A stretch of 63,743 nucleotides of DNA, counting the filler, from Octopus bimaculoides (taxonomy: Eukaryota): NCBI RefSeq assembly GCF_001194135.2. It is 6 parts of 6 records of this genome, joined end to end, with 100 filler letters (N's around TTAATTAATTAA, not from the genome) between each part and the next. Parts side by side here need not be neighbours in the genome. Positions count along the whole stretch, not along the records: positions 1 to 23,732 come from NC_068985.1; 5 more parts are not named here. The stretch is one strand, 5' to 3'. A model generated the notes under the pieces. It did not search any database. It saw only the letters and a list, made by a program, of their open reading frames with translations, and had not been told where the DNA came from. The translations under genes were made by a program, and so were the position numbers. Positions 20,546 to 22,497 of the stretch are shown piece after piece. Each line of letters opens with the position of its first letter. Position 1 is the first letter of the stretch.

Positions 20546-20716
20546 AATAATGCTGTTGAGCAGAGGCCTGTTCGCAAATGTTCAGAATTCAATGAAACAC
20601 AGCTGGCCTTTCTGGAGTCACAATGGCAACTAGGAATGGTGTCCATTTCCCGTGATTGTTGGAAGATGATTGACGATACTGCTGAATGTATTGGAATTTC
20701 ATCAGCTCGAGTAAAA
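20546..20716 (+). CDS. HDX: Homeodomain helices 1-2 and start of helix 3, HDX-like (highly divergent homeobox) protein
   Basis: Acceptor cctctttacag, donor AAA|GTAAGT, phase 0/0. NNAVEQRPVRKCSEFNETQLAFLESQWQLGMVSISRDCWKMIDDTAECIGISSARVK has F8, Q12, L13, L16, W20, A35, V45, plus the GM..S..C...I motif and an 18-residue W20-A35 spacing as recalled for vertebrate HDX homeodomains. Orthology unverified. Confidence 0.8.
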
Positions 20717-20727
20717 GTAAGTTGCAT

Positions 20728-20886
20728 TACTATTATCATCATCATGATTATCATCATCATCATCATCATCATCATCATCATCATCATCATCATCATCATC
20801 ATCATCATCATCATCATCATCATCATCATTATTATTATTATTATTATTATTATTATTATTATTATTATTATTATTATTATTATTAT
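20728..20886. repeat. (ATC)n then (ATT)n trinucleotide tract running into a gap
   Basis: Direct inspection; begins about 12 nt after the homeobox exon donor. Confidence 0.95.
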
Positions 20887-21290
20887 NNNNNNNNNNNNNN
20901 NNNNNNNNNNNNNNNNNNNNNNNNNNNNNNNNNNNNNNNNNNNNNNNNNNNNNNNNNNNNNNNNNNNNNNNNNNNNNNNNNNNNNNNNNNNNNNNNNNNN
21001 NNNNNNNNNNNNNNNNNNNNNNNNNNNNNNNNNNNNNNNNNNNNNNNNNNNNNNNNNNNNNNNNNNNNNNNNNNNNNNNNNNNNNNNNNNNNNNNNNNNN
21101 NNNNNNNNNNNNNNNNNNNNNNNNNNNNNNNNNNNNNNNNNNNNNNNNNNNNNNNNNNNNNNNNNNNNNNNNNNNNNNNNNNNNNNNNNNNNNNNNNNNN
21201 NNNNNNNNNNNNNNNNNNNNNNNNNNNNNNNNNNNNNNNNNNNNNNNNNNNNNNNNNNNNNNNNNNNNNNNNNNNNNNNNNNNNNNNNNN

Positions 21291-21450
21291 NGCGACAAAT
21301 ATATTTTGATAAATTAAATTTAAATGTTGAAGTGAATCTAACGGTTTTTGTGTGTTTTTAAATGGCTTATAAACACATTCCACACTGCAACTGTTTTTGT
21401 TTCAGCACACGATATCAGATCAGGTTACTTGCTATGCAAGTACATCTCTG
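21291..21450 (+). mobile_element. Arm of a foldback (palindromic) non-autonomous element
   Basis: Reverse complement of 23286-23445; its left part is lost in the gap. Confidence 0.75.
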
Positions 21451-22403
21451 TAATTTAGCAAAGTAATTTTCAGTTCAAAGCCAGTGTTTGGAACACTGTT
21501 TTTAAATGGCTTATAAACACCCTCCACACAGCTATTTGTTTACTTTACTAAAACTTACCAAAATCTTAATTTCACTTCTTTTTTTTTTTTTTTTTTAAGT
21601 ACATTAGTAGTTGTTTTTCATTCTGATCACAAATGGTTTAATGTAAAATCTTACTATCTTCTTTTTATTATACTACTAATGCTTCTGCCAGCAAATACTA
21701 AGAAAAATGATTAAATAAAAAGGAAACACTAAAGTTCTATTAATTTCTTCTCTTGTTACTTCTTTACTTTCATCTCTATTTCTTTTCTACCCTTTTCCTT
21801 TTTGGCTCTTGTTAGCCCCATGTAAGCCCCTTGCAAGAAGTGATAGAGCAGAACTATAACCAAATGTGTTCTAGTCACTGTTACCTCTTTTATTTAGAAA
21901 GCATAATTAGAATTACATTTCCCAAGTGTCCTTTTTCTTTTTCTTTTCCTTTCTTCAAAGGGTGTATGATTCAAAGCAGATTTGGCTGCTATTTCTAACA
22001 TGTTGAATGACCACGTAGAAACAGCTGCATTGGATTTACAAAAACTGTTTCTCTCTTTCTCTCTCTCTCTCTCTCTCTCTCTATCTATCTATCTATCTAT
22101 ATCTCTCTCTCTCTCCTCCAACTCTATAATTCTGTAGCATTTAAAATATTCAAATTCTCAAAGCATATTTCCATAAATATTTATTTCATCTCTCTCTCTC
22201 TCTCTCTCTCTCTCTCTCTCTCTCTCTCTCTCTCTATCTATCTATCTCTCTATCTATCTCTCTCTCTCTCTCTCTCTCTCTCTCAGATTTGCATCAGTGG
22301 CACACACACACACACATTGTTTAAATGTCCAGCTCTGTTTTAAATCATTTCTCCACTCTTCCAAGAATACAATTTATTGTTTTTTTTTACCCAATTTTTC
22401 TAG

Positions 22404-22497
22404 CGGTGGATCCAAGAGTACAGCAAAGCTCATGGCTTAGTCATAGATGAACCTGTCACTAGAAAACGCAAATTATCAGAATCCAAAAATACAGATG
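22404..22497 (+). CDS. HDX: Exon completing the homeodomain recognition helix, followed by a basic NLS-like motif
   Basis: Acceptor ttttttttacccaatttttctag, donor G|GTTTGT. Phase 0 reading RWIQEYSKAHGLVIDEPVTRKRKLSESKNTD puts W exactly at homeodomain position 48. Confidence 0.75.

Follow-up and report, generated by a model that had tools for sequence, protein, structure and literature searches.

The window analysed here, a stretch of 63,743 nucleotides (filler between its joined parts included) from the genome of Octopus bimaculoides, contains three exons, here termed A, B and C, of the uncharacterized gene LOC106869674 (protein XP_014770978.1, 1242 aa), and exons B and C together encode an HDX-like domain with a non-canonical recognition helix. 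The source gene was identified by an exhaustive phmmer search, in which the three-exon model was 100% identical to XP_014770978.1 over 146/146 residues, and tblastn placed residues 534-591, 592-648 and 649-679 of this protein on the three exons (coordinates in Table 1). Exon A, which is bounded by the acceptor tttttttacag/ and the donor CAG/gtcagt, joins exon B in frame and is 54% identical to its counterpart in the Sepia orthologue. Exon B (acceptor ttacag/, donor /gtaagt, phase 0 at both ends) translates as NNAVEQRPVRKCSEFNETQLAFLESQWQLGMVSISRDCWKMIDDTAECIGISSARVK, and exon C (acceptor ttctag/, donor G/gtttgt) as RWIQEYSKAHGLVIDEPVTRKRKLSESKNTD plus one base. The junction between positions 20716 and 22404 is the RefSeq junction of LOC106869674; moreover, a decapodiform genomic contig (L001) carries exon B with identical splice sites, and in spliced decapodiform transcripts (L003-L005) the same junction is uninterrupted (GCTAGAGTAAAG-CGATGGATA). 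Decapodiform contigs of 3.3-3.8 kb, obtained from 16 SRA runs, hold an unbroken open reading frame of 889 codons and therefore must be spliced mRNA. The exon translations and the splicing of 20546-20716 to 22404-22497 are thus exactly as claimed in a preliminary description of this DNA, with fitting splice signals and an agreeing RefSeq junction, and the RKRK stretch that was said to follow the helix is present, 12 residues beyond it. In the reading preferred below, what exons B and C of LOC106869674 specify is a genuine protein domain with a function.

By sequence comparison, this domain is specifically HDX-like, since three independent lines converge, namely specific profile similarity measured with controls, an identical loop length and an identical intron. 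In a PDB sequence search the sole homeodomain match was 2DA4, the second homeodomain (HD2) of human HDX, whether the query was the single sequence (phmmer E 0.012) or a profile built from five cephalopod sequences (E 0.016). It aligns without gaps across 51-57 residues, among them the loop between helices 1 and 2, which exceeds that of classical homeodomains by four residues. Aligned by hhalign to 16 vertebrate HDX HD2 sequences, the cephalopod profile reached 92.7% probability (E 4e-7, 49 gapless columns), and the first homeodomain (HD1) of fish HDX matched in the same register at 68%, whereas the controls, Antennapedia and the Oct-1 POU homeodomain (both sequences entered by hand), gave 0.45% and 0.56%; hence the likeness is to HDX in particular and not to homeodomains generally. 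The octopus domain shares with vertebrate HDX its length, F8, L/A13-14, L16, W20, G-M-x-S, C-x-x-x-I, A35, V45, W48 and I49. The homeodomain core residues F8, L13, L16, W20, V45, W48 and I49 are all present in it, and in the five cephalopod sequences they are invariant or conservatively replaced. An HDX-like pattern with a four-residue loop insertion had been proposed from the sequence alone; the PDB search, hhalign, the negative controls and the shared intron position all support it, and the vertebrate HDX string then quoted matches 2DA4.

The differences from vertebrate HDX are equally clear. Whereas HDX keeps R5, N51 and R53 (W-I-G-N-R-R-R-K) and passes the Pfam Homeodomain model with 27.8 bits, the octopus domain does neither; moreover, vertebrate HDX has two homeodomains, whereas in the 1242-aa octopus protein one such domain was detected, together with a GTF2I-like repeat and a chromodomain. 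Neither a GTF2I repeat nor a chromodomain was seen within 10 kb downstream of HD2 in the fish HDX locus. HDX is not known to have a GTF2I repeat or a chromodomain. The octopus and Sepia proteins, with their low-complexity N-terminal regions excluded, gave nothing significant against the fish HDX locus in tblastn; the domain is too diverged for this method, and the link to HDX therefore rests on the profile comparisons. A word-indexed protein search with the spliced peptide returned one genomic fragment only, and when the query was a 373-column cephalopod alignment, low-complexity candidates dominated and only one sequence (P0004) was returned.

The intron that splits the octopus domain is shared with both vertebrate HDX homeodomains. 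All 37 retrieved vertebrate HDX HD2 fragments (37/37) are single-exon read-throughs that diverge right after EI[VI][RK]. In a fish locus (L002), HD2 reads EIIK/gtcagg ... ttttccag/ACG TGG ATC GGT AAC (TWIGNRRRKYR) and HD1 reads VVR/gt ... cag/TWVGNKRRK, both in phase 0, while the octopus gene reads ARVK/gtaagt ... ttctag/CGG TGG ATC. Hence the intron stands at the same position and in the same phase in all three domains (V-[K/R] / x-W-I), a coincidence that is unlikely to arise by chance because about 190 position-and-phase combinations are possible in the domain.

Directly behind this intron the recognition helix is rewritten. In the gapless alignment with 2DA4, octopus positions 47-57 read R-W-I-Q-E-Y-S-K-A-H-G where HDX has T-W-I-G-N-R-R-R-K-Y-R; Asn51 is replaced by Glu, Arg53 by Ser and Arg5 by Cys, and positions 55 and 57 no longer carry a basic residue. 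The cephalopod helix 3 follows the pattern W-I-[QKN]-[ED]-Y-[SG]-K-A-[HN]-[GN] and departs from the HDX motif W-[IV]-G-N-[KR]-R-R-K. Five cephalopod sequences (O. bimaculoides, O. vulgaris, Sepia, a second decapodiform and a divergent intronless copy) agree fully at W48, I49, Y52, K54 and A55; all of them have Glu or Asp at position 51, Ser or Gly at 53 and Cys at 5. The substitution of Asn51, Arg53 and Arg5 noted in the preliminary description thus extends to every coleoid orthologue found. Nei-Gojobori estimates for octopus versus a decapodiform over 77 codons were dN 0.148 and dS 1.69 (saturated), with an omega of about 0.09; for the exon C part of the same pair they were dN 0.207 and dS 2.95 (saturated), omega about 0.07, and for exon B of two decapodiforms dN 0.021 and dS 0.70, omega 0.03. 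Overall, the omega values of exon B span 0.03-0.08. The comparison of dN and dS that had been suggested for the altered helix consequently finds it conserved and under purifying selection (omega about 0.03-0.09). As judged from these codon comparisons, helix 3 is a selected surface and not a decaying one, and its change is old and maintained; decay or a pseudogene was rejected, omega being far below 1. An intronless copy of the domain, 41-46% identical (…ECTRISPARIIQWINDYSKANN…), occurs in another cephalopod (L006, positions 215-523, and L007; Logan ERR12370324 and ERR12370320). This copy lies in AT-rich, genomic-looking DNA, is probably a retrocopy or paralogue and has the same non-canonical helix 3.

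The domain belongs to a multi-domain protein, whose GTF2I-like repeat and Polycomb/CBX-type chromodomain lie outside the window (Table 1). The chromodomain keeps the aromatic cage F/W/Y, and the protein ends right after its last strand (…WEPVDNIFTM, then stop), without the usual C-terminal helix. Comparison with known families shows a single repeat in the octopus protein and not the 5-6 of the GTF2I/GTF2IRD1 family, and a chromodomain which, unlike that of CBX proteins, lies at the very C-terminal end and breaks off short of the customary helix. In isoform X2 the chromodomain is absent. No described protein is known to join a GTF2I repeat or a chromodomain with an HDX-like domain. The product of LOC106869674 is probably a chromatin-associated regulator with other means of reaching DNA and modified histones. 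HOPX is a homeodomain-fold protein of about 73 aa that consists of the homeodomain only and is reported not to bind DNA and to act via protein partners. The earlier suggestion of a HOPX-like cofactor or dominant-negative regulator fits poorly with the octopus gene, and the comparison is weak because the octopus domain forms part of a larger protein instead of standing alone as a decoy; HOPX has, moreover, no specific sequence similarity to the octopus domain and is absent from the PDB matches. A small cofactor of the HOPX type was accordingly rejected for this 1242-aa protein with GTF2I and Chromo domains.

Table 1. Exons of LOC106869674 in the window, domains of its product XP_014770978.1 and the dispersed repeat of the window
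Feature	Position	Strand	Description
Exon A	18684..18859	+	aa 534-591, disordered Ser/Lys/Thr-rich linker before the domain; enters in phase 1, leaves in phase 0
Exon B	20546..20716	+	aa 592-648: N-terminal arm, helix 1, extended loop, helix 2, first half of helix 3; …RPVRKCSEFNETQLAFLESQWQLGMVSISRDCWKMIDDTAECIGISSARVK
B/C intron	20717..22403	+	phase 0; splits the domain between homeodomain positions 46 and 47
Exon C	22404..22497	+	aa 649-679 plus one base: remodelled second half of helix 3 (RWIQEYSKAHG), basic stretch TRKRK resembling a nuclear localization signal (NLS)
N-terminus of XP_014770978.1			conserved motif, then about 500 residues of low complexity
HDX-like domain	aa ~597-660		followed by basic NLS-like stretch
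GTF2I-like repeat	aa 803-873		E 3e-15; closest solved structure GTF2IRD1 repeat 2DZQ, E 1e-12
Polycomb/CBX-type chromodomain	aa 1202-1239		Chromo E 1e-11; closest solved structure CBX8 2DNV, E 7e-12
SINE-like (short interspersed element) repeat	22600-22960		copies at 4271-4601, 6501-6841, 7818-8150, 8922-9223, 10154-10308, 10573-10746, 14347-14686, 17826-17979

Taken with moderate confidence as the most likely reading, the domain would not bind DNA in the canonical manner and would have a protein-interaction or other non-canonical role within a large nuclear protein with GTF2I and chromodomain modules. It would derive from an HDX-type atypical homeodomain of three helices, with the loop between helices 1 and 2 four residues longer. 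Within coleoids, the latter half of the recognition helix would have been rewritten from W-I-G-N-R-R-R-K to W-I-x-[E/D]-Y-x-K-A-x-G, and Arg5 to Cys. An acidic residue would now stand where the near-invariant Asn51 reads adenine, and the phosphate and minor-groove contacts at 53, 55, 57 and 5 would be gone; because of these replacements, the domain most likely no longer docks on DNA as a classical homeodomain does. A division of labour may then be envisaged, in which the GTF2I repeat (DNA) and the chromodomain (methyl-lysine) would target the protein to chromatin, and the conserved remodelled helix may serve as a protein-interaction or non-canonical nucleic-acid surface.

Several observations weigh against this reading. 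At about 19 bits and 26-29% identity, the absolute similarity to HDX is weak, and a phmmer search of 1.84 billion representative proteins returned at E<0.001 neither HDX nor any non-cephalopod animal homologue; with the 146-aa model the matches were cephalopod sequences and one bacterial helix-turn-helix (HTH) repeat protein. Introns at 46/47 occur in other homeobox classes too, so that the common position is firmer evidence of homeobox ancestry than of a tie to HDX in particular. The native octopus and Sepia sequences are unreported by Pfam PF00046 (Homeodomain, curated cut-off 22.9 bits) even at E<=10, so that the Pfam search named as a check in the preliminary description yields no homeodomain match; the only Pfam signals from the native sequence are the sub-threshold ones of HTH_23 (11.5-18.8 bits, cut-off 24.6) and HTH_28 (14.2-19.6 bits, cut-off 25). 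Human HDX HD2 served as the PF00046 control (the 27.8 bits given above). In-silico swaps speak for the preferred reading: the octopus exon B part followed by the HDX helix-3 tail scored 21.2 bits (E 2.5e-4) on PF00046, and the HDX exon part followed by the octopus tail 14.6 bits; about 13 bits of the loss fall in the ten residues after Trp48 and about 7 bits elsewhere. Thus, most of the lost PF00046 signal lies in the helix-3 tail, and the protein carries no homeobox annotation because the rewritten helix pushes the domain under the Pfam threshold.

The predicted structure and the charge of the domain add points on both sides: the three predicted helices, the homeodomains among the Foldseek matches and the low net charge of the domain speak for the preferred reading, and the low model confidence, the absence of a significant Foldseek match and the basic residues that remain speak against it. 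Two AlphaFold2 (AF2) runs on a shallow cephalopod alignment placed three helices where they are expected for a homeodomain, at 10-28, 36-49 and 53-66 in an 88-aa query (mean predicted local distance difference test, pLDDT, 61.6) and at 13-23, 31-44 and 48-61 in a trimmed 67-aa query (mean pLDDT 67.7); these values of 62-68 are of low confidence. Foldseek against the PDB found nothing significant for either model (best E 0.64 and 0.79). Its non-significant matches are mostly homeodomains (TM about 0.45-0.5, about 3.2 A), with 2DA4 at rank 2 for one model and rank 1 for the other, and the transposase HTH TnpE (2RN7) is near the top of the lists. The retention of a homeodomain fold, which the preliminary description had inferred, is hence no more than consistent with AF2 (pLDDT 62-68) and Foldseek (E of at least 0.6). 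Several basic residues are retained as well, namely Arg3, Lys4, Arg44, Lys46 and Arg47, along with Gln50 and Lys54. Helix 3 has a net charge of +3 to +4 and is followed by the TRKRK stretch, while the domain as a whole has a net charge of +1 and an isoelectric point of 7.9, compared with +3 for HDX HD2 and +12 for Antp. To call the DNA-reading surface destroyed, as was done at the outset, is too strong, given these basic residues, the net +3 of helix 3 and a tail that resembles DNA-binding HTH_23 motifs.

It is this last resemblance that gives rise to the most serious alternative, in which the helix would have been re-specified and not disabled, and the domain would still bind DNA in the tri-helical HTH mode of paired/Tc1-type proteins. 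The contacts would then be made by S-A-R-V-K-R-W (Arg44, Lys46, Arg47), by Arg3 and Lys4 of the arm and by TRKRK, and the W-I-x-E-Y-x-K-A-x-G tail would stand in structurally for the W-x-x-R-Y-x-x-x-G motif. No Pfam families other than HTH_23 and HTH_28 respond to the native sequence (14-20 bits, E 0.001-0.04). Helix 2 with the remodelled tail (DDTAECIGISSARVKRWIQEYSKAHGL) aligns with bacterial HTH_23-type repeats at an hhalign probability of 94.6% (41% identity, 27 columns), a result that also weighs against the reading preferred above, whereas HDX reaches only 15.9% with the same repeats; the bacterial protein with these repeats was, moreover, found by phmmer at E 1e-7. The helix-2/turn/helix-3 part and the W-x-x-[ER]-Y-x-K-x-[HN]-G tail are alike in the octopus domain and in paired/Tc1/IS630-type HTH domains (HTH_23, HTH_28), and this tail is typical of paired/Tc1-type HTH domains, which bind DNA. 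The strong conservation of the tail and the positive charge of helix 3 fit such a mode as well. However, helix 1, the long loop and helix 2 of the octopus domain are unmatched in these families, every HTH_23/28 score is under its curated cut-off and the match spans 27 residues only; the intron position is one shared with HDX homeodomains, the whole domain is nearly neutral, and in the homeodomain docking mode the acidic residue 51 faces the major groove. We therefore rate DNA binding in this mode as unlikely, though well worth keeping in mind beside the loss of canonical binding. A bacterial protein encoded on an ENA metagenome contig of 2.66 Mb (P0007) has some ten HTH_23-type repeats in tandem (pattern …GM.ISQIAEKLGISRSTISNWTHEYRKEHNI…), following what by eye seems to be ankyrin-type sequence, and these repeats resemble the octopus helix-2/helix-3 segment.

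An origin outside the homeobox genes is a weaker rival than DNA binding in another mode, and we consider it improbable. The domain would here be a domesticated transposase-type HTH or an independent three-helix module, and its likeness to HDX (GM-x-S, C-x-x-x-I, V-x-x-W-I) would be convergent. The silence of Pfam Homeodomain, the sub-threshold responses of HTH_23, HTH_28, HTH_Tnp_ISL3 and HTH_Tnp_1, the presence of TnpE among the top Foldseek matches and the absence of intermediates outside cephalopods in the phmmer search speak for such an origin. It is opposed by the full-length alignment without gaps to HD1 and HD2 of HDX, which share the unusual loop length while generic homeodomains stay below 1%, by the intron identical to theirs in position and phase, and by the 21.2 bits that exon B reaches on PF00046 once it is given a canonical tail.

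The remaining alternative ascribes the odd helix to a mistaken junction: exon B would really be spliced to an exon with a canonical W-F-x-N-R-R helix that is hidden in the assembly gap at 20887-21291. This gap does exist and its length is only estimated, but the idea is very improbable and effectively refuted for the main isoform: in the RefSeq models of three Octopus species, in the Sepia model and in the spliced transcripts of 16 runs, RWI follows ARVK immediately, the gap lies between a microsatellite and a dispersed repeat, exon C is conserved and under purifying selection, and the processed intronless copy in another cephalopod has the same helix type. The gap falls within the B/C intron, flanked 5' by an (ATC)n/(ATT)n microsatellite and 3' by a dispersed repeat; microsatellites and dispersed repeats are among the contents of this intron. 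Between ...ARVK and RWI... no residues stand in the RefSeq, O. vulgaris, O. sinensis or Acanthosepion (Sepia) pharaonis models or in the 16-run transcripts, and across the intron sequence available, no phase-0 acceptor other than 22404 leads into an x-W-[IF] peptide, with no W-F-x-N-R-R alternative. The hidden exon with a canonical W-x-x-N-R-R helix, which the preliminary description had itself raised as a way in which it could fail, was thus not borne out, since models and spliced decapodiform transcripts run from ARVK to RWI. The gap is intronic and hides no exon of the known isoforms; since splicing joins the exons, the reading frame does not depend on continuity across it.

The Hdx family was erected for human HDX, whose homeodomain was described as highly divergent and atypical, and was counted as one of those lacking invertebrate orthologues (Holland et al., 2007; PMC2211742). 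In later homeobox surveys Hdx figures solely as a multi-homeobox or weakly POU-associated family, and it is unreported in the spiralian and oyster surveys among the literature searched. Our literature search yielded nothing relevant on Hdx from molluscs or lophotrochozoans, and no paper that names the locus or its identifiers. The cephalopod gene is only a candidate orthologue of Hdx, the phmmer search having retrieved no non-cephalopod invertebrate relatives. A bolder proposal, which we put forward only tentatively and would not expect to hold in full, is that the cephalopod gene is the protostome counterpart of Hdx, that an HDX-type homeodomain was present in the bilaterian ancestor, and that selection in coleoids turned its recognition helix into a new, conserved non-DNA surface, within a previously undescribed architecture of HDX-like domain, GTF2I repeat and Polycomb-type chromodomain. 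If true, an HDX-type homeodomain in the bilaterian ancestor would contradict the listing of the family as one without invertebrate orthologues (PMC2211742), and the gene would show how, in nature, a homeodomain came to serve as a chromatin-adaptor module. Databases label the protein "uncharacterized" or "Chromo domain-containing"; recognition of its HDX-type domain adds a cryptic member to the cephalopod homeobox-derived repertoire and gives the poorly understood HDX family a possible protostome relative. It also points to a natural experiment at least as old as the octopus-decapodiform split, in which the Asn51/Arg53 surface was replaced and not degraded, beside two chromatin/DNA modules. The consequence is modest unless binding assays reveal what the new surface does.

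Some further features of the gene and the window were seen. Isoform X3 has an alternative first coding exon at 913-1051 (+) (MKSTHPPTTTGTRRHMH…RTIQ, donor GT at 1052), which sits in CA/ACC-rich low-complexity DNA and looks like a weak, possibly artefactual start of the gene model. An Rfam scan of the window gave no match. Four assembly gaps lie in the window (3202-3563, 9676-9796, 13172-13608 and 20887-21291), at least three of which, among them the one in the B/C intron, adjoin microsatellites or dispersed repeats; the DNA just past 21291 is a copy of the repeat found at 23287-23445 (-) and 23513-23685. Additionally, the SINE-like dispersed repeat of about 330 bp has at least 10 occurrences on both strands, at 66-83% identity, and is the source of most of the long 'ORFs' (open reading frames) of the window.

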